From Epithemia pelagica (taxonomy: Eukaryota > Protista > Bacillariophyta): a stretch of 64,000 nt of DNA. The notes beneath the pieces were generated by a model. That model had not been told where the DNA came from and made no database searches. It saw only the letters and a list, made by a program, of their open reading frames with translations. Location: the NCBI GenBank assembly GCA_946965045.2, contig OX337232.1, forward strand, positions 3,658,001-3,722,000, read 5' to 3'. This document shows, in pieces, positions 20,218 through 34,327 of this stretch (positions are counted from its first letter, which is position 1; each line of letters opens with the position of its first letter). Position numbers and translations under genes: made by a program.

Positions 20218-21080
20218 GGGTCTTTTATTCCATGTATATATAGGACGAGCACGATGATGATGATATGATGATTATGAGTTGTCGTTTTTTTTTCTCTATT
20301 ACAGATTCTCTGTCGGATTCTCTGGGACCAATCATATAAACGCGACTAAAAGACGTCTCGCCCTTCATTCCCAGCGTCTGTCCATCCCCCTTTCCAAGCT
20401 ACCCGTTCTACTTGTAACCTAGTGATACCTCTAGCTAGGAGTACTCCTAGTACAAGCTGAGTTCAGACAGAATGTTCCTGACGTAGCGCTCCAGTAGGAA
20501 ATCTACGTAATCCGCGCGAGCCATCCCCTTAATATAGCCCTTTTATTTATGCCTCTACCGTTCTACCAAAAATTGACCATGGTGAACGGTCCTTTTGACC
20601 GATCTCTTGCCAAATAGGAGACGGCTCCATGATCCCATGCTCTGAACCTCTTCTCCATTCATGGGTTGAGCATGGAGAACGATGTCGGCGCTGCATTCGT
20701 TTTGTAGGTGTCGTTTTATCTAGTTGAAGGTGGTCGCCGCGCGATTTACTACGGCGACTCACGGCAAAACTTGGTGCAACCAATGCACCTCTATTGTAGA
20801 ATCGAATGATAGAAGATAGAACAAAGACTATGAACACTTGTAGCGTTGTTCACGTCAAAAATTGATATTCTTCTCGTTAGATATATGGAACTTAGACTAG
20901 AAGTTGCGTCGTTCACAACAAAGATTGATGTTCTTTTCTTTGTTGTGACTCACACAGCCGTACCTGAACGCAATGTATTGTACGGTAAACGTAACACAAC
21001 TGTAGAATTAGATCGTATTCATAGAGAATGAAGATCCTACTCAAATGATAATCATAAAACGCTGCTACATTGTTCACTAT

Positions 21081-21653
21081 CTAGGCTTGTTGATGATTAA
21101 AGAAGAGATTTTGAAGCGGGTGCTTGAGCATCATCGCACCAAGCGAAATGTTGAAGCGATCCATATCCTTGCTGCCCATGTAGATTGTAACGACCTGGGG
21201 TTCCATGCAGGCTTTAGGGTTGATGGAGCAGCGTGTGTAGAGGCGGATGCGTCCCATGGGAGGTCCGTTCTTGCTCGTCTTTCCAGAGACCTGGTCCAGG
21301 TGCGACAGAGCAATGAACCCAACTGGAACAACCAACGCTGGTTCCTCATGCTCGCTTGTTGCATCCCGGTCAAAGACTGCAATCCGTAGGTAGTCGGTCG
21401 CAAGCTCCCGCTGCACAAGCAGATGGCCACGGTCGACGATGTTGTGGCCAGTGTCCTTGTTTCTCGACATGGGCCCGATGAGCGCGCAAACATCGCTGGC
21501 ATAAAAGCACGACTTGAACGGGAGACCAGCACCACCCTCACGGCCATCCTCTTCGTTGAACTCGAACTTCGTCCTCATGTTGGTCATCTTGTTTCTTCTT
21601 CCTTGCCTCTTCCTGTCGTCTCTGTTTGATTGTTCCATTGCACGGCGGGTCAT
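21081..21653 (-). CDS. Hypothetical protein (cargo A, 190 aa)
   Basis: ATG-started ORF with GC3-rich codons (LVQRELATDYLRIAVFDRDA…). Divergent from cargo B. No recognised domain. Confidence 0.4.
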   Translation of the reverse strand: MTRRAMEQSNRDDRKRQGRRNKMTNMRTKFEFNEEDGREGGAGLPFKSCFYASDVCALIGPMSRNKDTGHNIVDRGHLLVQRELATDYLRIAVFDRDATSEHEEPALVVPVGFIALSHLDQVSGKTSKNGPPMGRIRLYTRCSINPKACMEPQVVTIYMGSKDMDRFNISLGAMMLKHPLQNLFFNHQQA

Positions 21654-21824
21654 TCGGAAGTTGCTTCATGCTGCAAGTTGATTTTGTGGCGCGCGCCGAT
21701 ATTGTTCACGAATGAGCGCGGGGGGATTCCCTAGATGACACAAGAACGGAGAGCGGGCAACAATCAAACAAACAAACACAACAATCAAACGAACGAATCC
21801 CTATTGTGTTCTCACTTTCCAACG

Positions 21825-22722
21825 ATGCGCCAGACGCGTAGTGCTACCAAACGAGCTGAGTCTGCGAAGAAGGAGCAGGAGGACTCCGCCGCAGCTCCCT
21901 CCACAACCGCATTTCCCTCCGACAAGGGAAACAAGGCAAACAAGAAAATGAAGACAAAGACGGCCGTGGACAACAAAACGTCGAAGAAGAAGAAGACGAC
22001 GACGACGAAGTCTCCCGCTTCGACAAAGAAGCATGTGACCTTCAACCTTGAGGGTCCTTCGTCGTGGCACGAGCGCGCAAAACAGTGGCAACTCACCATT
22101 GGGGATGAAGATGGTATCCCAGTGTTCTTCGTCAGCAACAAGGACGTCGAATGCGCTAACCTGTCGGATATCGCGGCAGAGCTCCTTGCGATCGAGGCTG
22201 TCGGCAAAGAAGGTAAGTTTGATTGTTCATTGTTGGTTTTGAGTCTCCCTTTCTCACGACGCGCCCTCTGCTGCCACAGACACCAAACCCAACAGCAAGC
22301 CCGACAACAAGCCCGACAGCAAGCCCGAGAAGGAGATCAAGAAGGAGGACGACGTCGAGAACAAGACTCCAGAGTCTTATGTGACCCCGAAGAAAGTAAC
22401 TTCTTCCCCGAAGGTGGCGTCTCGAGCTTTCGCACTGACCCCCTCCCAGAAGCATGCTTTCCAGCGTCGGATTGCTGAGGAACAGGTGAAGGAAAGTGGA
22501 GCGACAGACCCTCGCCAGACTTTGAATGAGTCGCTGGCATTGGGAGAAAACATCCCGTCGTCTCCTCCTTTGTTCTTTAGCAATCCTTCCCGTGCATACC
22601 GGACATCCATTGATTCGTATGCCGATGATGGATTTCTCGAGACCCAAGAAGACTTCATCGGTACGCAGCAAAACGGGCTTTTTGGTCCCGATTACTTGGA
22701 TCATGAGGACGAGGCGTACTAG
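21825..22722 (+). CDS. Lys-rich hypothetical protein (cargo B), 2 exons
   Basis: ATG at 21825 (MRQTRSATKRAESAKK…). Intron 22213-22279 (GTAAGT…CACAG, 67 nt) joins in frame to DTKPNSKPDNKPDSKPEKEIKK…DHEDEAY*. Confidence 0.65.
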
Positions 22723-23247
22723 ATATCTACTGATGGACGTTTTAGGTATCCTTAATCACTAAATATGAATCGATTTGTCATCATGGTACTTGTAGTGCTT
22801 CTACAGTCGTTCTTGTTGTGATTATCATTATTGTCGTCGTCCAAGTCCTCGTCATTGTCGTGGCTATCATTGTCGTCGTTGTATTGTAGTCGTCCTTGTT
22901 GTAGCTATCATCGCTCATCCCGTTTGTCCTCTTCATCATCGTTATGGTCGTGATTGTCATGGTCATCATCATCGTCGTCGTCGTCATCCAGCTTCCCAGT
23001 GTCGGTAGTTGGGTCCCGGTTTGCGGGCGCGTCTCGTATGGATGTACGAGGGAGTTCGTGATTGGTCCCAGACGAGCTATGATTCTTATCTCATATTTTG
23101 CGTTTTCGACACTTCATGGAAACAAACACGACAATGTACTAAAGTATAATATGAAGGAATAAACAATAAATCTTAATGTCATACTGCAACTCAACGTACC
23201 ATGGTATTCTTTTTCAACAATAACACACTTTCACCACGAGGAAAGAT

Positions 23248-26136
23248 CTAAGTTTGATCGGCTTCTTTGCTCGCGATCTTCTTACCAGGTTTATAATTCG
23301 CGGCCACAAGCACCTTACGAGGATTGTCACTTAGGACGCAAACACGCTTGTCCCCGACCCAAAGCTTAACCCCAACGAGCCCACTTCGGCGAACACCAGG
23401 GATGTCTTTGTCATGGAAGTAGTAGTCGGAAAGCCTGCTTTCTCCAGAAGGAAGGTTGTAGGTGTTCTTTGGCATGGGATCGTGAACGGTCCCATCTTTT
23501 CCTTGGTACACGTAGAAATGTGCACGTGGATTCCCCATCTCCCCAGTCTTAAAGCCACCAGCATGGACAGTATCTCCTCGAACGAGGAGAAACGTGCCAT
23601 ATGGGATATGTACCACTTTACCCAGCTCGTTCATATAATCCTTGTGCTTCTCACCGCGGAAACTCCACAATTCAACGGACATACCCTCCTCCGCCAGGGG
23701 CATGAAAACAATAAAAGGCATGCGTTCCCGGAGTGGCAGATCTGCATTCGCTCTCCGAGTCTTTTTGATTGGTTGCTTCCCGGAGGGCGTTTTGGGACCT
23801 TCGGACATGTTCCCTGTTACGCTCTGGAACAAGAAGTCGATGTGAGGTTCTTGAACTTTTGCCTCTGTGGTCTTCATGAACGAAAGGTGAATGTTGATTT
23901 GGTCCGCAAATGAATCATCTTTTGCGTAGTTCATCCCATAGAGAGCTGAGGCAAGCAGCTGCTTGAAATTGGCCGTGACCTTTGCAGCATGTTCGGGGTT
24001 AACGTGGCCGAAATACCGAATGTTGGACACCATTCCCTCATGTTCCATCATTGCCATCAACAAATTTGGTGTGTAGTCTTGAACAGATTTGAAAAATTTG
24101 CCCTTTCCTTTCTGGTCCAAGCCTGTGCTGTGCCACGCATTCTCCAACATTTCGAGGAGATCTGGCGGAGTTGTCAAAAAATATCCTCGATACATTTTGT
24201 TTTCAATATCGTACAGCCATTTGAAATACTTCGAGCGCAATTCTCTATGTAACAACTTCATTTCCTCGAAACGCTCATTCTCCTTCGCTTTCGCATCGAT
24301 CGCTTCCATCTCCTCAAAAATACTATCCGTGTCATCTTCTGCCATTACCACTGGTACGAACATTCCAGTACTAGGGCTGGGATTGGCTTGAGTGGCGGGT
24401 TGAGCTTGTGCTGCAGGTAGGACGGGACTGCTGGGAAGGAGCACGGGTTGAGCTTGTGCTGCAGGTGGGATGGGATTGCTCGGAAGGAGGTGGGGTGAGC
24501 CTTCGACCGGCTGGGTCGTGCGTTGTTGTTGCTGCTGATGATGGAGCGATGAAGGTAGAGTCCCCCCGTAACCTCCATAGTTGGGTTGATTGTAGGACGG
24601 AGGATGTCCATGGTACTGCGGCGGAGGATGACTCGTCGGAGGATGAGGATAATGCGGCGGAGGATAAGGATAATGCGGCGGAGGATGATGATTGTACTGC
24701 GGCGGAGGGTAATTGTACTGCGGCGGAGGATAATTGTACTGCGGCGGAGGATGGTGATAATATTGCGGAGGATAATGCGGCGGCAGCTGAGGGGGCGAAT
24801 TGTAGTGCTCAGAAACGTCTTGCGGAGGAGGCGGAGAAGGAAGAGCAGGAGGACGAGCAACAGCAGCAACTGGGCGGAAAACAGTAGTAGAAGAGGTAGC
24901 GAAAGCCTTCTTTGTTTTTTTCCCGTCGTCTTCATTTTCATCACTGGGTCGACCGCGTTTCTTTCCCTCGTCTTCGTCGTCGTCACCTTTCGTCGACGGT
25001 CGGATAACCTGTTCGGAGGACGTCGGCGATTCGTCCGAAAGGTTATAAAACAAAGACAGCTCGTCGCCCTTTTCGATCCGCTTGATTGCCTTGACTAGAA
25101 GATTCGGCATGATTCTCACGTTGTAATGATCATCCGATTCATCCGGTGGATTGTCTGTACCGTACCGATGGTGTAGGTGGTCGTTGATTAAGTGCAGCCC
25201 CATGCCGAAGTGATCGTCGTTGTCTGCTTGAAGCCTTCGATTGTCACGTCCGAACTGAATCGCGTACTCGTTGGGTACACCGAACTGAATCGCGTACTCG
25301 TTGGGTACAACTGTCCGAGACGTGACGTCGTTTCCCGTGTACGCACCAATCACTTCACCATCTTTGATTGTCCGAGCTGCAAAAACGCCAAACCCGGCGC
25401 CTGGGAGTTTTGACTCCTTCACCTCAAACAGAAGCACTTTTCCAAGGTAGATCTTGACTACCGGATTGTTCGCAAATGTGTAACCGACATGCTTGCCGAT
25501 CGGGAAGGTATGTTTTCTGTTCTTCTTGACAGAGAGACCCATTCCACTCGAAAGTGGCACAATCTTCCCCTTTTGCATGCCAGAACCGGGCTTCCGAATT
25601 GGAGCTTCTTGGACCGAAAAAGTGGCCGAAATCTTCCGTGAGACATACTCTCCCATAGCACAGGCAAGTACAGCACTGTCTTTGATCTTGGAGAGCGTCT
25701 TGAGGCCTTCGGTGAATTTCCTGATTGGATCCCGTCCAGAACGAGAAGGGAGTTTCTCCACTTCCTCGATGCCTTTCTTGTAGTCCTCTGTGCGCGTATC
25801 GATGAGGAGCTGCCGCATTTGAGTTTCCGAATACTGTTTGCTGTGGTCCTTCTCTGGATGGCCACGCCGAACATCTGCAAGCTTTTTATCCTTCACTTCG
25901 GCAAAGTCTTGATCCGAAAGAAACCGATGGTGCTTTGTTGTTGTCGCTTCGTCTGTTGCTGCTGCTTCGGGTGCTGCGGCTGCTGCTGCTTCGGGCGCCG
26001 CTGCTGCTTTGGCTGACTGCTCTTCCGCTGCATCTATTGCAAGTATAAGAGCGTCAAGATTTCCTTTGTCACTCATGCTGTCTCGTTTTTGAGCGCCTGC
26101 TTTTGAATACTGTTTCTTAGGGCTTGGTTTCCCCAT
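23248..26136 (-). CDS. SET domain + C-terminal 2OG-Fe(II) dioxygenase fusion protein (cargo C)
   Basis: Minimal SET domain (VKESKLPGAGFGVFAARTIKDGEVIGAYTG…LHLINDH…VKAIKRIEKGDELSLFY). Pro/Tyr/His-rich linker. DSBH motifs QEPHIDF (HxD), FIVFMPL, VHIPYGTFLLVRGDTVHAG (distal H) and NPRAHFY (R). Likely ATG at 26136. Confidence 0.8.
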   Translation of the reverse strand: MGKPSPKKQYSKAGAQKRDSMSDKGNLDALILAIDAAEEQSAKAAAAPEAAAAAAPEAAATDEATTTKHHRFLSDQDFAEVKDKKLADVRRGHPEKDHSKQYSETQMRQLLIDTRTEDYKKGIEEVEKLPSRSGRDPIRKFTEGLKTLSKIKDSAVLACAMGEYVSRKISATFSVQEAPIRKPGSGMQKGKIVPLSSGMGLSVKKNRKHTFPIGKHVGYTFANNPVVKIYLGKVLLFEVKESKLPGAGFGVFAARTIKDGEVIGAYTGNDVTSRTVVPNEYAIQFGVPNEYAIQFGRDNRRLQADNDDHFGMGLHLINDHLHHRYGTDNPPDESDDHYNVRIMPNLLVKAIKRIEKGDELSLFYNLSDESPTSSEQVIRPSTKGDDDEDEGKKRGRPSDENEDDGKKTKKAFATSSTTVFRPVAAVARPPALPSPPPPQDVSEHYNSPPQLPPHYPPQYYHHPPPQYNYPPPQYNYPPPQYNHHPPPHYPYPPPHYPHPPTSHPPPQYHGHPPSYNQPNYGGYGGTLPSSLHHQQQQQRTTQPVEGSPHLLPSNPIPPAAQAQPVLLPSSPVLPAAQAQPATQANPSPSTGMFVPVVMAEDDTDSIFEEMEAIDAKAKENERFEEMKLLHRELRSKYFKWLYDIENKMYRGYFLTTPPDLLEMLENAWHSTGLDQKGKGKFFKSVQDYTPNLLMAMMEHEGMVSNIRYFGHVNPEHAAKVTANFKQLLASALYGMNYAKDDSFADQINIHLSFMKTTEAKVQEPHIDFLFQSVTGNMSEGPKTPSGKQPIKKTRRANADLPLRERMPFIVFMPLAEEGMSVELWSFRGEKHKDYMNELGKVVHIPYGTFLLVRGDTVHAGGFKTGEMGNPRAHFYVYQGKDGTVHDPMPKNTYNLPSGESRLSDYYFHDKDIPGVRRSGLVGVKLWVGDKRVCVLSDNPRKVLVAANYKPGKKIASKEADQT

Positions 26137-26548
26137 GGTCGAAACGCAAAAACTCGAAACACGAAACACAAGAAACACGAAACGCAGCATTCTCCTCAGC
26201 CCTCAGCTCACATTCCAAAAAAAAAATCTTGAGCTCACATACTAAAAAACGGTGAAGTTTTGGTATGTGGGCTGAGTTACTTAAGGATTTGCGTGCCAGT
26301 TTTGCGATGCGTGCGCGTTTTCGGAGAGGGAGGCGTGTTTCGCGCGAGGTCTGCTCCGAAAATCGTCCATTTTCTCGCTCTCTCACATTTTCGAGGTACT
26401 TACAAACTGATAATCCAACACGCAACACGAGCACGCAACACGGAAGTGATCATTGATACCAATAACTGACAAGAAATACATTCAATAAAATGGATTGCTC
26501 TTATAAATAGTTAAGTTACATGCATTTTGATGATAAATGGAGATTAGA

Positions 26549-29500
26549 TCAGGTTTCTACTGCGCCAGATCCTTGCGTTTCTCTCCAGAGACGTGAGATG
26601 AAGCCATGATCTTGGTCGAAGGCGGATCGGTGACACTTGATTGCTTTTGACATCTTTTCAATTTCGGCATACGAGAGGCCCGCAGCTGCATAGTCTCTGT
26701 TGTTGGAATTTTGATCGTATAACAAGTACGCGAGCATATAGCGACGTGCCTTTGCTGACATTTTCCGCATGATTTCGGGTGTTGTTTTCTTCAGGCTCGC
26801 TGTCAAACATCGTAAAAAGGCAGCTTTGTCTTTCTTCTCATTCAGTGAGAAAGCACGAAAGACTTTTTTTGAGTAACCCCAGCCATACTCGATCCCCTCA
26901 CCGGCCATTTCACAGTGATACTTGGTCGATACGAGAATCTCGATCCTGCAACGATGTCGTTCAGACAAGTCTTCCGCCAGCTTCTCCATTGCAGATTTTT
27001 CGTTCTTGAAATCGGAGCATTCGCTCATCAGATGAACCATAGAGTACTTTTTGTAGTCCGCCTGATAGGCTTCTTTCACAGTCTTCTTATCCGCTTCCAA
27101 CCATGCATCTCTGGTTGTCTTGACGTACTTGATCATGTTGTTAGGGTCTATCCACCCCCGCTCCCATAACACTTGAAAGAGCCCTTTTGCAGCATTCATC
27201 CAGCCTTCCTCGATCACGTCATCTTCAATCACCGTTGCAATGTTGGAGCGTTTACAAAGGTCCTGTAGTTCACCAGCATTTTTCGATTGAAATGAACGTT
27301 GCATTCCAGGTCCCATGACCCGGACAAGTTTTGCCATGAGCTCCTTCTTTGTGAGGTTGCGCTTTTTCTTTCTACCAGTTCGGTGTGTATTCTTCGATGC
27401 GACACGCTGCGCGTCATTGAGACGATGGCCTTTTTTAGCAACTGGACCACGATCGTTCTCCTGATAGACGAGGTGTTGTACGTCACCAACTCGTAGTTTG
27501 TCGTCATGGTTGTACGGGCCAAGGCAAGCTTGATCAATAATTTGTGTGTCCCGCATGCTGGGAACAGCTCCTCCCCAGTCGTTATTCATGTTCAGAGCAT
27601 TTAACCCATCGGATTGTTGTTTTCCATGACCACTGCTTTGGTCGAACAAAAAGACAAAGTCATGGGCGGGGAACATGACCACGAGGCAATCGACAATATC
27701 CTCCAACTGCAAGGCCATGTATTCATAATTCCAATATCCCTCTTTATCTGCTCCGTATTCAAAAAAGCGAGTGAACGGTTGGGCATTGGTAATTGGAGTC
27801 TTGGCAGTGTGACCATTGAGGTTCACTGCAGCCTCGGTAGAGACGTATTTGTTGTGTGTCGCATGTAGACGGAGTTCATTAATCCAAAATAGACTCGCAG
27901 CAAGCAACGGGTTTCCGTTCATAAGGAAGCCCCATGATCGGCTTACAAAAGCGCTGATCATCATCCCATGTCCATCATCCTTTGGCAGCATTTTAGTTGC
28001 GCCATCTTTAGTGTACCATGCCTTAGACGAGAAGGAAAACTGCTTGTAGATCGGTTCGTCCTGGCCGATGAGGATGACAGGTTTGCGGTCGGAGGGAAAC
28101 CTGTGTGACAAGTTTCCATTGTGAATTGTGTTTTCTGGTTTGATGTACCGTTCAAATTCGCTTGGGAAGGCATCAACATGGTACTCCCGCATCTGCTTGC
28201 CTGTTGTTACATCAGTGTACTCAAATACAAAGCTGTTTGGCAAGAGCTTCTCCTTGCCCGCATTCCCTTCGTTTTCAAGTTTGATTGCATCCTCGGTAGG
28301 GAGCTGCACCCACCGATACGACAGCTCTTCCCACTTAAAGTACTTCTTGACAAAAGCAGCTCTGTGGGCAACATTCTCAGCATTTTCGTGTCGATCAGTG
28401 AAGTATGTTTTCGTGTGTTCCTTGAACACGAGCCCTGCAGCAGCAATACATCGCCACGCTGTGCTTTGCAAAATGGTGGAAAGCTTCATCGATGCCAAGA
28501 AGGCCTCGTACGATACTGGCGTTGCATTCGTATCCATGCACTCTTGTACGATCATGGTATGCATATCCGGAAGCAATGTTGTCCTCAGGTACATTAGAGC
28601 AGACTCTGTTGTAAGAGTGCTCAGGTTTTCCTTTGCCCAGCATTCAAACTTTACCTTTGCTTCAGGTATGTGAACGAATAAGACGGGCGATGGCTCTTTC
28701 CCAATATGAACGTGGTAGTTGGGATGAGGGAAACTGTCGTTTTCCCGAAAGTACCTGTGAAAACGAGCAATGGTCTTGGGATGTTTTTTTACTTTTTCAC
28801 CATAAATCTGTTCCATTTTGCTAATGGCTTCGCTTATGCAGTTCAGCCATGTACGACCGTGTGGCATATCAAGCAACGCTATCTTATAAGAAAGTTGTAA
28901 ATACGTTGCCTTGAGCAGTACCCTCTGTTGCTGTTCCTGGTTGAGGGGGAAGATGTCTCCCTTGTTAACCACATTCGGAAGTGCCTCCACGTTGGAAATG
29001 GCCCTTTCAAGGGTTTCTATCCATCGCTCAAGATTTCGTTTTGACGATCCTGGAGAATCGCATTTGCCGGCAAAGAGCCTACGGTTCCTTGGCTCATCAA
29101 AATAGGCCCTTTCCATTTGTTGCGATAGACCTTGGATCATCTCACTCTCGAAAACTGAAAAACCAATCGGCAAACTCTGTGGATGGTCATGGCCAATTTC
29201 GTCTGTGGCCAATTCAGGATGTTGGATTGCTCCAACAAGCACCTGATTTGTGTTGTCGTGAGGTGGTGACGTTTGCATTTCGGTAGGGCTGTCTCCAATT
29301 TGTGGCGGTTGACCATGTTGCTGCGTTGCAGTGCTCTTGATTGCTGGTGGAGTTGAAGTGTTTCTTGCTTGCTTGGATGTATTTAGCGTGCCTTCACGCA
29401 ACCCTGGTGACTCTTTGTTCCTTCGCTTCGTTGGCTTCGCTCGTCCCGACCGCCGAATCATATTCTCGTCTGCAGCCTCCAGCCATTCTTGATGATCGTC

Positions 29501-29893
29501 CAACATCACTGGCCCTGTTGTTGTGTCGGAGCTTACATAAAAGAATGTGTATCTTTTCTTTTGGATTGTGACTTTGTGGCGGTACCAGCCAAACTTGTTT
29601 GATTCCGACACCTTAGTTTCGAAACAGAGTTTAAGAACAACATCTTTAGTCAAAACAAGATTCAGTCTGAATGGCGACAGTCCTGGCAGCCAAGTGTGCA
29701 TGAAGTTCACAATCTGGGTGTCTTGGATCCACTTGTTGCAGAACCCAAACGAGGATGGGGAGCATTGCGTCTTAAAGACGTCAAGAATCTCTTGTGCCGA
29801 TAAACTTCGTTCCATCCGAGACTGTGTTGCGTGGGATGAGTCGGATGATCGCGTCATTGAGTATGATGCCAACCCCGTACCTTGTTGCCCCAT
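26549..29893 (-). CDS. Large DDE transposase, IS630/Tc1/mariner-related (1114 aa)
   Basis: Putative triad LIGQDE (D at 28060), FLFDQSSGH (D at 27643) and KYHCEMAGEGIEYGWG (E at 26890). The ORF is uninterrupted and lies between TA-flanked TIRs. Confidence 0.85.
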   Translation of the reverse strand: MGQQGTGLASYSMTRSSDSSHATQSRMERSLSAQEILDVFKTQCSPSSFGFCNKWIQDTQIVNFMHTWLPGLSPFRLNLVLTKDVVLKLCFETKVSESNKFGWYRHKVTIQKKRYTFFYVSSDTTTGPVMLDDHQEWLEAADENMIRRSGRAKPTKRRNKESPGLREGTLNTSKQARNTSTPPAIKSTATQQHGQPPQIGDSPTEMQTSPPHDNTNQVLVGAIQHPELATDEIGHDHPQSLPIGFSVFESEMIQGLSQQMERAYFDEPRNRRLFAGKCDSPGSSKRNLERWIETLERAISNVEALPNVVNKGDIFPLNQEQQQRVLLKATYLQLSYKIALLDMPHGRTWLNCISEAISKMEQIYGEKVKKHPKTIARFHRYFRENDSFPHPNYHVHIGKEPSPVLFVHIPEAKVKFECWAKENLSTLTTESALMYLRTTLLPDMHTMIVQECMDTNATPVSYEAFLASMKLSTILQSTAWRCIAAAGLVFKEHTKTYFTDRHENAENVAHRAAFVKKYFKWEELSYRWVQLPTEDAIKLENEGNAGKEKLLPNSFVFEYTDVTTGKQMREYHVDAFPSEFERYIKPENTIHNGNLSHRFPSDRKPVILIGQDEPIYKQFSFSSKAWYTKDGATKMLPKDDGHGMMISAFVSRSWGFLMNGNPLLAASLFWINELRLHATHNKYVSTEAAVNLNGHTAKTPITNAQPFTRFFEYGADKEGYWNYEYMALQLEDIVDCLVVMFPAHDFVFLFDQSSGHGKQQSDGLNALNMNNDWGGAVPSMRDTQIIDQACLGPYNHDDKLRVGDVQHLVYQENDRGPVAKKGHRLNDAQRVASKNTHRTGRKKKRNLTKKELMAKLVRVMGPGMQRSFQSKNAGELQDLCKRSNIATVIEDDVIEEGWMNAAKGLFQVLWERGWIDPNNMIKYVKTTRDAWLEADKKTVKEAYQADYKKYSMVHLMSECSDFKNEKSAMEKLAEDLSERHRCRIEILVSTKYHCEMAGEGIEYGWGYSKKVFRAFSLNEKKDKAAFLRCLTASLKKTTPEIMRKMSAKARRYMLAYLLYDQNSNNRDYAAAGLSYAEIEKMSKAIKCHRSAFDQDHGFISRLWRETQGSGAVET

Positions 29894-30409
29894 TGAGGGT
29901 GGTTCAAGTAAACCCTAAAGCGTCCGGATGCAGCTCGGCAACAAGGTACGCGGTTGGGATGGCCCTCCACCATGGTCGTTAGACAACAACCGTTTTTTCA
30001 TCATTTTCGACGGAATTCTAGCGTTCGGAAGCTGTCACACATCACGGTACGAATAAAAAAATTTATTATTCAGACACTGGGTTGTCACGAGTCGGACACT
30101 TTCATTCACTAGTCAGGCCAAACGCTATTGAGGATTATATTTTATGGTACTAAATCTACGAGGGGTCTACGTCAGGAACATACTCCCTGAACTCAGCTTG
30201 TAGGAGTAGATCTTTGTGTCCTTTGTGGGGTTTGTCCGACGCAACTTTCACTATAGATCGAAACAAAGTGTGCCAACCCAGAAGAGAATGGAAGAGAACC
30301 CACAAGTGCATACACAAATCGTGTCGAGCCCAAAATAGGTCTTGTTGTTGTGTCGCTGTTCTGTGATGCAAGCCACCACAAAAGCAGAACACATTTGTCG
30401 AGGATCGCA

Positions 30410-30447
<38 letters not shown>

Positions 30448-30653
30448 CTCTCTCTTGTCTATGGTACAAACTATGTATTAGCTACTCTTCATAACGCATG
30501 CAAAACGCCCAAGAGGGTTTATGTCACACTTTTTATGTATGGATCAGGTTCTACTAGATTGACTTGTAGGATTTTACTACTACAAAAAAAAGAAGAAACC
30601 CACCACACCAACGCAACAAGTCGTTATCTTTGGTTCGGTATTGGGTATCGAGC

Positions 30654-31778
30654 TTAGGCAAACCGGGCATCCCCCAAATCCTGCGGATCGCGAGACACAA
30701 TGTCATCCTCCTCATCTTCGTCTCGTCGAGTGGTATCCTCTTCTTCCTCTTCGGCTTCGTCAATGCGATCGTGTGGTGCCATGGAATTTTTGTTAGTGTT
30801 GTTGTTGTCGGCAATGGAGGATGACGACGTGTGTTGAAAGTGTTCGGTATCGGCCGTGGAAATGCTTTCATCGTCAAAAAACTGTGCTTGGGCGGGAGCC
30901 GGTTGTCCTGGATTGCCCGCGGCCGGGGTCCAACCAGCACCATCATCATTGCCATTGCCGGATGGCTGGGAAGGTGTTTGTTGACTGCCCGCGACATGAT
31001 GGACAAATCGTTCATCTTCATGATCGTACCAATAATCATCTTCTTCGCGTCCTCCCGGTGGTGGCATATCGGGTCGTTTGGGCGGCTGTGCCATGCTCTT
31101 GACCAGAATGGCCAACATGAGATAGGCCAGGAACGCGAAAATGGCATTGCCAGTCCCATTGGATACTTGGCACACATTTGCTTGACAAAACCAATTGCCA
31201 TACAAGAGACTGGTACAGGCCATGCAAATACTGGCCCACAAACAGCACCACAACAACCATCGTTCAAAGTTCCATGGTTTACAAAAGAAACAACAACTCC
31301 CAATTAAACAGATATAGGTGACGAGGCCCAACAAATCGCCGACATGGGCCAAATTACGAGCCCATTTCAACCAAAAATCGTACAATTCATCCGCTTCGTC
31401 GTCCGGATACAAGATGCAACCAAGATAATTTTCCTCGTCCCCATAGGCCACTTCGCGAGCAATCAAGCCATAGCCGCGTCGTGTCGTTTCCATCGGTTGG
31501 CCCGTGACTGGATTGAGTTCGGTAATGGTGGCAAATTTGCAACTCAGAATGACACACGTGTTCATCCAACGGGCAAATAAGGCTAGAATCACCCCCATGA
31601 CGGTATAACAGGGACCATGAGGACAACGACTATAGTATAGTAGGATTGTGTGTAAGAACAGTGGAATTGAACCAAAAACGTGTTGTTGGTACGAATGCCA
31701 ACCAACATCTAATCCAGTGAGCAAGCACAAGTATTGAAGAGTAATAAGGATGAGGTGGTCAATATCCATGCCACCCAA
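30654..31778 (-). CDS. Claudin-like four-TM membrane protein with acidic tail, paralog 1
   Basis: Pattern TM1-SCKF…GYGL…GCILY…D.WLKWAR-TM2…TM3…WFCQANVCQV..GTG-TM4. The 5' end is uncertain; a possible intron ends at a tatag acceptor before RCPHGPC. Confidence 0.6.
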   Translation of the reverse strand: MGGMDIDHLILITLQYLCLLTGLDVGWHSYQQHVFGSIPLFLHTILLYYSRCPHGPCYTVMGVILALFARWMNTCVILSCKFATITELNPVTGQPMETTRRGYGLIAREVAYGDEENYLGCILYPDDEADELYDFWLKWARNLAHVGDLLGLVTYICLIGSCCFFCKPWNFERWLLWCCLWASICMACTSLLYGNWFCQANVCQVSNGTGNAIFAFLAYLMLAILVKSMAQPPKRPDMPPPGGREEDDYWYDHEDERFVHHVAGSQQTPSQPSGNGNDDGAGWTPAAGNPGQPAPAQAQFFDDESISTADTEHFQHTSSSSIADNNNTNKNSMAPHDRIDEAEEEEEDTTRRDEDEEDDIVSRDPQDLGDARFA

Positions 31779-31938: not shown

Positions 31939-32890
31939 ACAACTCGATCGAATCATACCCCGCTCCTTCAAACTACCACAGGACTCCATCTCTCGTTCCA
32001 CACACAACAGAACGGTACTTTTCGGAAACGTACCACAATCCCCACCAGAGGCAATCGGGCAATTTGCATCCAATCCAACAATTGAAAACTCGTTTCTTGA
32101 GAAACTGGATAAATTGCTTGAACGTACAACAACAAAACATGATGTTATTATTGCTGCTTGTCCACTTTCCTTTCGAGGATAGTCCTTGCGAATTGTTCGT
32201 GTTGGTGGCCAACCACACTGGGGCTTTTTCACACGGTCGATGTTTCCCTTTTTGTGGACGGCTCACAGAAATGGTTTCGGACCTTGTTGTTTTGATGAGG
32301 CATCTAGAGATTTGTTGCGACCCTCCTTTCCAATTTGCAAGAGACATTCTTGTACTCCCTATCCACACCAATAAGCAGTCGCGGTCTTCCGGTCCAGGTC
32401 ACGGTCACTTATTCGTGTTTCGTGTCGTAACGAATGGACCCAGCGTCCGTCCTTCCGCCCCATTCAAAGCTACCCGTACTATTGTGTGTCTTTGTGTCCT
32501 TTGGGTTTAGTCAGACGCAACTTTCACTATATTATCGATACACACAAATCAAACGAGAATGATGAGAACCATACACAAATCGTGTCGAACCAAAACAATA
32601 GGTCTTGTTGTTGTGCCGCTGTGCTGTGGATGGAGGATGCAAGCCACCAAAAGCAACACGGTTCTCGAGAATTGCAGCATCTCTCTCTTCTCTCTCTCTA
32701 CTATATGGTACAAACTATGTAGACACTCTTCATACCTGCAAACCGCTCTAGAGTTTGTGTCACACTTGTTATATATTATTTGGATCTGGTTCTACTTGAT
32801 TGACTTGTAGGATTTTACTACTACTGCTACAAAAAAAAAGAAGAAACCCACCACCAACGAAACAAGGTGGTTCGGTATTGGGTATCGAGC

Positions 32891-34327
32891 TTAGGCGAAC
32901 CGGGCATCCCCCAAATCGTGCGGATCGCGAGACACAATGTCATCCTCGTCGTCGTCGTCTCGTCGAGTGGTATCCTCCTCTTCCTCTTCGTCAATGCGAT
33001 CATGAGCAGGCGCCATGGAATTTTTGTGATTGTTAGTGTTGCTGTTGTCGGCAATGGACGACGACGACATGTGTTGAAAGTGTTCGGTATCGGCCGTGGA
33101 AATGCTTTCATCGTCAAAAAACTGTGCTTGGGCCGGAGCCGATTGTCCCGGATTGCCTGCCGCCGGGGTCCAACCAGCACCACCATGATTGCCTGGTTGG
33201 GAGGGTGTTTGACTGCCTACGACGGAGGGTTCGGCATAGTAGCGGGGAAAGGGTTGGGCGGGCGCTTGTTGCGCTTGTGGCGGTGGTGGAATCTGGGCCG
33301 CCTTTTCTTGCGCTAGTCGTTCTTGATGTTCCTTGTCCCGTTGCAAAAAGTCATGATCTTGCGGCGGAGCATACTTGTCTTCGGGACTCATGTATTCTTG
33401 CATTTCATCGTAATTGTCATGTTGATTGACAAAGGTACCTTCTTCGTTATTGGTGGTCGGTTGGGGACGACGACGTCGTCGTCGTTGCCACGGACGACGG
33501 GGCGGACGATGGTTGTCGGCATCGACCGTTTCATCTTGCCAGGCATCTTCGTCATCGTCCTCCTCGTCGTCGTCGTCTTCATCGTCCCGGACAAATCGTT
33601 CATCTTCATGATCGTACCAGTAATCATCTTCGCGTCCACCCGGTGGAGGCATGTCGGATCGTTTGGGCGGCTGGGCCATGCTCTTGACTTGATTGGCCAA
33701 CATGAGATAGGCCATGAACGCCGATATCGCATAGCCCGTCCCATAGGAGACTTTGCAGACATTGTCTTTACAGAACCAATTGCCATACAAGAGATTGGTA
33801 AAGGCCATGCAAATACTGGCCCACAAACAGCACCACAACAACCAGCGTTCAAAGTTCCAGGGTTCACACAAAAAGCAACAACTGCCAATCAAACAGGTAA
33901 AGGTCACGAGGCCCAACAAACCACCGACAAAGGCCAAGTTGCGGGCCCATTTCAACCAAAAATCGTACATTTCGTCCACTTCCTCATCCGGATACAAGAT
34001 GCATCCACGGTAATTTTCCTCGTCGCCATAGGCCAATTCCCGAGCAATCAACCCATAACCACGCCGGGTCGTTTCAATGGGTTTCCCCGTCACCGGGTTG
34101 AGTTCGGTAATGCTGGCAAATTTGCAACTCATGATTACATACATGTTCATCCAACAGGCTCCAAAGGCCATGATCACCCCCATGACGGTATAACAGGGAC
34201 CATGAGGACAACGGCTGTCGTGTAGTATAGTAGTAGAATTGTGTAAAGGAAAATTTGGGTCGAATCGAATCCAATCAAATCCATAGGCAACGGAAACCAA
34301 AGCAAAACGTGATGGGGTAGATACCAA
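32891..34327 (-). CDS. Claudin-like four-TM membrane protein with acidic tail, paralog 2
   Basis: Closely similar to paralog 1, with the same C-terminus (DDIVSRDP.DLGDARFA*) and ~100 aa more in the cytoplasmic tail. 5' exon uncertain. Confidence 0.65.
   Translation of the reverse strand: MVSTPSRFALVSVAYGFDWIRFDPNFPLHNSTTILHDSRCPHGPCYTVMGVIMAFGACWMNMYVIMSCKFASITELNPVTGKPIETTRRGYGLIARELAYGDEENYRGCILYPDEEVDEMYDFWLKWARNLAFVGGLLGLVTFTCLIGSCCFLCEPWNFERWLLWCCLWASICMAFTNLLYGNWFCKDNVCKVSYGTGYAISAFMAYLMLANQVKSMAQPPKRSDMPPPGGREDDYWYDHEDERFVRDDEDDDDEEDDDEDAWQDETVDADNHRPPRRPWQRRRRRRPQPTTNNEEGTFVNQHDNYDEMQEYMSPEDKYAPPQDHDFLQRDKEHQERLAQEKAAQIPPPPQAQQAPAQPFPRYYAEPSVVGSQTPSQPGNHGGAGWTPAAGNPGQSAPAQAQFFDDESISTADTEHFQHMSSSSIADNSNTNNHKNSMAPAHDRIDEEEEEDTTRRDDDDEDDIVSRDPHDLGDARFA

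Follow-up and report, generated by a model that had tools for sequence, protein, structure and literature searches.

A SET domain–2-oxoglutarate/Fe(II) dioxygenase fusion gene carried by mariner-like and piggyBac-type DNA transposons in a diatom

Results

Organization of the fusion gene and of its carrier element

The window analysed here is a stretch of 64,000 nt from contig OX337232.1 of the diatom Epithemia pelagica, and coordinates refer to positions in this window unless another locus is named. It contains a DNA transposon, hereafter element A, in which a single gene encodes a SET domain joined to a C-terminal 2-oxoglutarate (2OG)/Fe(II) dioxygenase domain (the SET-2OG protein, Table 1). 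The open reading frame (ORF) runs without interruption on the minus strand from an ATG at 26190 down to 23248 (23248..26190, 980 aa). M19 (MGKPSPKK, window 26136) is taken as the conserved start because one copy of the gene, L007, lacks the upstream ATG, and the ORF found is in agreement with the interval 23248-26136 proposed in an earlier reading of the same DNA from its letters (the original prediction). A conserved N-terminal module, which matched nothing in Pfam and PDB sequence searches, is followed by the SET domain, by a basic KKRGR...KKTKK stretch, by a low-complexity linker whose DNA holds the 21-bp repeat families D2, D6 and D13, and by the dioxygenase domain. The possibility of two genes read through a linker was ruled out, since the continuous ORF recurs in at least 10 protein variants and in a 46%-identical second family, family B, described below.

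The fusion gene lies 412 nt downstream of the transposase ORF, inside an element whose ends read TA/CAAGCTGAGTTCAG...CTGAACTCAGCTTG/TA (slashes mark the junctions with the target-site duplication). The TA/CAAGCTGAGTTCAG ends are identical in six copies of this element, whose flanks are unrelated. Both the adjoining transposase and the linkage to terminal inverted repeats (TIRs), the former claimed and the latter put forward for checking in the original prediction, hold true. A 98%-identical protein variant, P0002, is encoded at five loci (L001-L005) of assembly ERZ21939226, where the internal gene order is alike and the neighbours are different. The 90% cluster comprises 14 protein variants, nine of them full length (948-970 aa, about 14 of 19 gene calls), the others being truncated or frameshifted. 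Element A is a young, multi-copy and recently active cut-and-paste transposon.

The transposase gave no sequence match in Pfam, NCBIfam or PDB. Its protein-language-model features cluster with DDE_3 (Tc1/IS630-type) transposases, with a top score of 0.96 and 214 shared features, and its sequence offers D612, D751 and E995 as a plausible catalytic triad, the second spacer of which is very long. In having a TA duplication and TIRs, element A behaves like a very divergent transposon of the Tc1/mariner superfamily.

Table 1. Features of element A in the window, and loci of element B.
Feature	Coordinates	Strand	Remarks
SET-2OG fusion gene	23248..26136	-	962 aa from M19, stop codon included
N-terminal module, conserved	25579..25932	-	aa ~87-204; HRFLxDxD ... 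GRDP ... APIRK
PR/SET-like SET domain	25042..25425	-	aa 256-383
In-frame 30-bp tandem duplication inside SET	25249..25308	-	two units differ by one synonymous base
Low-complexity linker, His/Pro/Gln/Tyr-rich	24334..25035	-	aa 386-619
2OG/Fe(II) dioxygenase domain	23371..24333	-	aa 620-940; H783-x-D785, H876, R889
Dioxygenase motifs	23833-23850, 23551-23571, 23512-23532
Family-A DNA transposon (element A)	20453..30200	-	9748 bp; genes on minus strand; similarity to copies L001-L005 ends exactly here
TA target-site duplication, left	20451..20452	.	TA flanks 6/6 copies
TA target-site duplication, right	30201..30202	.	TA flanks 6/6 copies
Left TIR	20453..20497	+	~45 nt, imperfect, begins CAAGCTGAGTTCAG; inverted-repeat pair I1, end sequences, arm-to-arm comparison
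Right TIR	30156..30200	-	inverted-repeat pair I1, end sequences, arm-to-arm comparison
Putative transposase	26549..29893	-	1114 aa; candidate D612, D751 (FDQSSGH), E995
Third conserved ORF	21735..22478	+	247 aa, Lys-rich; 249-250-aa gene call in L001-L005 and L008
piggyBac-type element B	L013:1893-16220, L006:740-12905, L014:2637-13665		11-14 kb; transposase, TIRs, 4-bp duplications

A second carrier and selection on the fusion gene

The same architecture was found in a divergent family, family B. One of its members, P0172 (523 aa), is 42% identical to the linker and dioxygenase part of family A, and the ORF directly upstream is 45% identical to the N-terminal and SET part (E 9e-79), with a weak Pfam SET match; both are in one frame and are split by a TGA. 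An intact family-B fusion, P0178 (921 aa), is present at another locus and is 46% identical to family A over its whole length. The alignment of the two families keeps the N-terminal module (46% identical, with many invariant positions), all the SET motifs, the basic stretch, a linker of which the composition and not the sequence is preserved, and the HxD/H/R core of the dioxygenase.

Three family-B loci carry, on the opposite strand, a piggyBac-type transposase (DDE_Tnp_1_7, PF13843, E 1.1e-8, 35.2 bits vs 22.4). The copies of this element B have perfect termini and TIRs, with terminal inverted regions of about 1.2 kb containing tandem arrays of a ~193-bp unit, and the 4-bp duplications flanking three copies are CTAG, CTAT and CTAT, compared with the canonical TTAA. 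The SET-2OG gene is the sole similarity between elements A and B, and the dioxygenase domains of the two families are sisters with 100/100 support in a tree of this domain.

Selection was measured between the two families because the family-A copies are underpowered for the dioxygenase domain. The proportions of nonsynonymous (pN) and synonymous (pS) differences were 0.26 and 0.65 for the SET domain and 0.36 and 0.72 for the dioxygenase domain, giving ratios of nonsynonymous to synonymous substitution (dN/dS) of about 0.21 and 0.20 respectively, values that are approximate because synonymous sites are near saturation. Within family A, the dN/dS of the SET domain ranged from 0.22 to 0.49. Both catalytic domains are under purifying selection. 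The full-length alignment of A and B, the sister position of their dioxygenases and the dN/dS of about 0.2 indicate that the whole architecture arose once, was kept by selection and changed carriers. As an accessory gene kept by selection, the SET-2OG gene has passed from one transposon superfamily to another, its carriers being mariner-like and piggyBac-type.

Additional lineages were observed at two loci. L008:8084-11086 is a mosaic copy of element A whose SET half is 94% and whose dioxygenase half is about 61% identical to family A; this difference between halves reveals a divergent A' subfamily that recombines with A. P0015/P0165, considered as a separate host gene, was ruled out as such and corresponds to the dioxygenase half of this broken mosaic copy. 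A third, decayed lineage at L009:9227-10672 retains a SET fragment 59% and a dioxygenase fragment 51% identical to family B, with a much shorter spacer, and no transposase homologue was detectable within 10 kb of it.

The C-terminal dioxygenase domain

In a Pfam search of the SET-2OG protein, the C-terminal third had no match. An exhaustive HMMER search with aa 620-980 retrieved 241 representative clusters at E ≤ 1e-3, 63 of them at E ≤ 1e-10. In an alignment of 40 homologues, H783, D785, H876, Q780, D873 and G878 are invariant and R889 is nearly so; the metal triad and R889 are kept in family B. The AlphaFold2 model built on this alignment reached a predicted local distance difference test score (pLDDT) of 85.3 and a predicted template modelling score of 0.82, with the topology usual for the 2OG fold, the distal His following a strand at model positions 247-252 and the Arg opening a strand at 270-277. 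Searched with Foldseek, the model gave 379 PDB matches at E ≤ 1e-3, every match listed being a 2OG/Fe(II) oxygenase, and the Swiss-Prot models gave the same outcome. A search of a viral structure library returned generic 2OG oxygenases only. The double-stranded beta-helix with an HxD…H…R signature expected from the original prediction is thus borne out by the predicted fold, by its structural matches and by the invariant residues, which confirm, far beyond chance, that the C-terminal domain is a 2OG/Fe(II) dioxygenase of an undescribed family.

No Pfam 2OG model (JmjC, AlkB, TET/JBP, PhyH, P4H or other) matches any of the 40 members, even at E ≤ 10. The profile of the family compared with PDB sequences gave as best hit FtmOx1 at E ~0.1; a staphylocoagulase match in the same search was judged spurious. 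JmjC and TET/JBP structures are missing from the 50 Foldseek matches listed and from the top 50 of both VIA searches, one guided by Foldseek and one independent of it; AlkB relatives lie about 2 Z units below the best structural matches. PhyH-like enzymes and prolyl-4-hydroxylases/PHD share with the domain the double-stranded beta-helix, the HxD...H triad and an Arg on the strand after the distal His.

Relatives of the domain occur in MMETSP transcriptomes and in host genes. The homologue P0020 has PGK, WD40 and TPR genes as neighbours, and this synteny recurs in three samples; in the homologue P0034 the dioxygenase is joined to a TFIIS N-terminal domain (PF08711, E 3e-12), a fusion that gives a hint of a nuclear role. 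Since this protist gene family also exists as ordinary single-copy host genes, the dioxygenase is a captured one.

Downstream of the domain, the family-A protein ends in a tail of about 75 aa (window 23248-23370, aa 941-980), without counterpart in family B. In a low-confidence model it forms a beta-hairpin and a helix, and it could be a small binding module.

The SET domain

The Pfam model PF00856 matches aa 266-383 over its full length (model positions 1-105 of 105; E 5.8e-7, 30.3 bits vs a gathering score of 22.4), and all the motifs quoted for a compact SET domain in the original prediction are present. The family-B homologue scores 18.2 bits with this model, under the threshold. The closest PDB sequences are PR domains, those of MECOM (E 1.4e-4), PRDM16 (E 2.1e-4) and PRDM12 (E 2.5e-3), the PRDM12 alignment spanning the whole SET domain including its ELxxxY end. 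The Pfam PR-domain model PF21549 remained below threshold (12.1 bits vs a cut-off of 27). Protein-language-model features place it nearest to SET and PR/SET proteins of small size from Nucleocytoviricota (giant viruses) and haptophytes, with a score of 0.96. Such small viral and algal proteins, of which the vSET of PBCV-1 is an example, and PRDM3, PRDM12 and PRDM16 resemble the domain in being compact and in having neither pre-SET nor post-SET; unlike the PRDM proteins, the present one has no zinc-finger array (no C2H2 zinc finger was found in the Pfam search), and its SET domain is one part of a multidomain protein of 960 aa. No match came from a word-based search restricted to the SET part; run with the full-length protein, the search was swamped by low-complexity words and returned only the protein's own cluster.

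SET domains are defined by four motifs: I (GxG), II (YxG), III (NH(S/C), the pair binding S-adenosylmethionine) and IV (ELxF/YxY, with the catalytic Tyr). Three of them are canonical and do not vary among the copies or in family B, namely I (G264-A-G266), II (Y284-T-G286) and IV (E377-L-S-L-F-Y382). Catalytic competence of the domain is plausible.

Discussion

That transposons fight host silencing with chromatin- or DNA-modifying enzymes of their own has been recognised recently, the VANDAL anti-silencers being a known case of counter-silencing encoded by a transposon. The nearest published parallel is found in red algae (Bostrychia, Chondrus), where Plavaka, Mutator and Zisupton elements carry PAG2, an N6-adenine methylase with a SET domain, and PAG3, a DNA-binding domain of ParB-like kind with a 2OG oxygenase, as cargo that has hopped between superfamilies (bioRxiv 10.1101/2025.02.11.637652). 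Compared by description only, both cases have a SET domain and a 2OG oxygenase together as large DNA-transposon cargo, superfamily switching and a proposed epigenetic manipulation for the benefit of the element, whereas the red-algal domains belong to two separate genes and ours to one polypeptide, on mariner-like and piggyBac-type carriers in a diatom host. Neither a methylase nor a ParB domain was detected here. The ~193-bp arrays of element B recall the tandem repeats beside PAG3 in red-algal Plavaka elements, for which a function as binding sites was proposed in the same study (bioRxiv 10.1101/2025.02.11.637652), where Helitron captures of SET and 2OG and a SET domain in HarbingerS are also noted.

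Other systems share one half of the association. In Phytophthora, the gene for a SET histone methyltransferase is carried by HarbingerS and MuDR transposons (Kojima and Jurka 2014, cited in PMC12730594), which is likewise SET cargo on DNA transposons of a stramenopile; the superfamilies differ, and no SET-fused dioxygenase is reported there. TET/JBP dioxygenase genes ride fungal KDZ/Plavaka and other DNA transposons (PMC12730594), as the original prediction noted for KDZ elements, making 2OG/Fe(II) dioxygenases a recurrent cargo of heterogeneous DNA-transposon lineages; the present oxygenase differs in being fused to SET and in not being TET/JBP-like by fold rank or sequence. SETMAR/Metnase again has a SET domain together with a mariner-superfamily element (PMC9062482), but there the transposase is domesticated and immobile and has a host SET gene fused to it, whereas here the element is mobile, SET sits in a cargo gene of its own and the transposase has another ORF. 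In Ectocarpus, a Sola1 element has a ParB-methyltransferase gene on board (PMC12477816). In our literature search, neither a SET-2OG fusion in a single chain nor cargo of this kind on mariner-like or piggyBac elements of diatoms turned up. Separate SET and 2OG transposon cargo genes are thus already published for algae and oomycetes, and what is new here is the single-chain fusion and its presence in two superfamilies.

These findings add to the known cases a diatom host, two more transposon superfamilies and a single-chain fusion showing both selection and recent mobility. They also draw attention to a family of 2OG oxygenases in marine protists that is uncurated and comprises at least 241 sequence clusters. 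Being compact and clonable, the SET-2OG gene is a good candidate for experiments on the role of such cargo.

The reading that we favour, tentatively and at a probability a little short of even, is that of a captured and selected transposon cargo which modifies nuclear proteins for the benefit of the element. The SET-2OG protein would be made alongside the transposase and would then enter the nucleus, where the SET half would methylate lysines on nuclear proteins and the 2OG half would oxidise or hydroxylate such proteins, the likeliest targets being histones or else other chromatin or transcription factors. The outcome would favour the expression or the mobility of the encoding element, as a counter-silencing or chromatin-conditioning cargo. 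A nuclear protein-modifying enzyme is suggested by the usual substrates of the SET fold, by the TFIIS-domain paralogue, by the retention of the gene in two transposon families and by the published precedents. A protein appears a more likely substrate of the oxygenase than DNA, RNA or a small molecule, and demethylation is a possible chemistry, not the likeliest. A bolder version, which we regard as doubtful though worth stating, is that of a self-contained mobile counter-silencing enzyme, a single polypeptide rewriting two types of mark on chromatin or nuclear proteins, at its own element or near it, and passed between mariner-like and piggyBac-type transposons for the fitness it confers; its oxygenase would then represent a new nuclear 2OG family of marine protists, modifying proteins or possibly nucleic acids.

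Several observations weigh against the cargo reading. Motif III of the SET domain departs from the canonical NH, family A having N336-D-H338 and family B N-D-P, with only N-D conserved, and the AlphaFold2 model of the N-terminal and SET half (aa 78-393, alignment of 8 sequences from both families) was unusable with a pLDDT of 35.4; for these two reasons SET competence is not proven. PR-type SET domains likewise lack the canonical NH. As to decay of SET residues across copies, a point raised in the original prediction, motifs I, II and IV are intact and motif III reads ND(H/P). The SET domain of the window copy has an insertion of 10 aa. Small-molecule enzymes rank first among the structural neighbours of the oxygenase. 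As regards selection, to the near-saturation of synonymous sites between A and B is added a mosaic synonymous divergence within family A (dS of 0.05-0.13 in SET vs ≤0.013 in the 2OG domain), probably resulting from recombination, and the comparisons between near-identical family-A copies rest on very few substitutions (1-3 in the 2OG domain). Among the read runs containing the sequence, X1 and X2 are genomic, given their contigs of up to 509 kb and their flat depth, X3 is ambiguous, and no RNA-labelled run is listed; canonical intron ends were found at no joint in X1-X3. Finally, the benefit to the carrier elements is a probable one, drawn from conservation and from precedents.

Alternative explanations differ mainly in the chemistry that they assign to the oxygenase. 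The original prediction saw in the protein a possible writer and eraser of chromatin or DNA marks, in which a JmjC, AlkB or TET/JBP-type demethylase or nucleic-acid base oxidase would clear repressive lysine or DNA methyl marks at the element and the SET domain would write another. Its SET domain is upheld by PF00856; against its demethylase part stand the absence of JmjC and TET/JBP structures from the best 50 of each VIA search and from the Foldseek matches listed, the lower rank of AlkB relatives and the failure of all Pfam 2OG models on the 40 family members. We hold the combination to be improbable. The closeness to small-molecule enzymes could instead mean a PhyH-like metabolite hydroxylase unrelated to chromatin, with a SET domain that methylates a non-histone protein or is vestigial. 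The original prediction named such a grouping as one that would speak against it. PhyH (PF05721) matches no family member, and protein prolyl hydroxylases trail by only about 0.5 Z, in a smooth gradient from 12.2 to 9. Nuclear protein partners are suggested by the protein-lysine methyltransferase fold to which the oxygenase is fused and, in the host paralogue, by the TFIIS N-terminal domain; a metabolite enzyme offers no obvious reason for its retention by two transposon families. We hold this explanation to be decidedly unlikely. The resemblance to prolyl hydroxylases could also be taken to mean that the oxygenase acts on its own Pro-rich linker or on similar Pro-rich nuclear proteins, regulating the stability or assembly of the SET enzyme. 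This proposal is purely circumstantial, low-complexity linkers being common and the P4H Pfam models giving no match, and we give it the least credence of all.

The gene could also be of no use to its carrier, a host gene or gene fragments having been picked up in the manner of Pack-type transposable elements and amplified without function for the element. The existence of the dioxygenase family as ordinary host genes is in agreement with such an origin, as are the broken copies (P0004, P0011, P0014/P0165, and L006 with its in-frame TGA), the finding of P0178 as the only intact family-B gene product and a transcription that is unproven. This view is difficult to reconcile with a four-part architecture and catalytic motifs that persist across 54% sequence divergence and two unrelated transposon superfamilies, with dN/dS values near 0.2 in both catalytic domains, with a gene that is the only sequence common to the two elements, and with a full 2.9-kb ORF kept in about 14 of the 19 family-A gene calls listed. 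We consider it very unlikely.

Other features of the elements

The Lys-rich ORF on the opposite strand of element A (Table 1) has no Pfam match and is a candidate third cargo gene. The 30-bp duplication lies in the variable middle of the SET domain and is absent from the other aligned paralogues except P0007, which is probably the window's own ORF. In element B, the number of ~193-bp repeats varies from copy to copy. In five of the six insertions of family A, the base after the TA duplication is G (TAG), and several flanks read CTA/TAG (20440-20452, 30201-30213 and the flanks of L001-L005), which suggests that the target preference of element A is wider than TA. Immediately beyond element A lies a tandem duplication (30631-31337 and 32868-33922) of a segment that encodes a membrane-like protein of 374 aa, with a spacing of 2.2-2.6 kb and an identity of 87-95% (repeat families D3, D8, D10 and D11).

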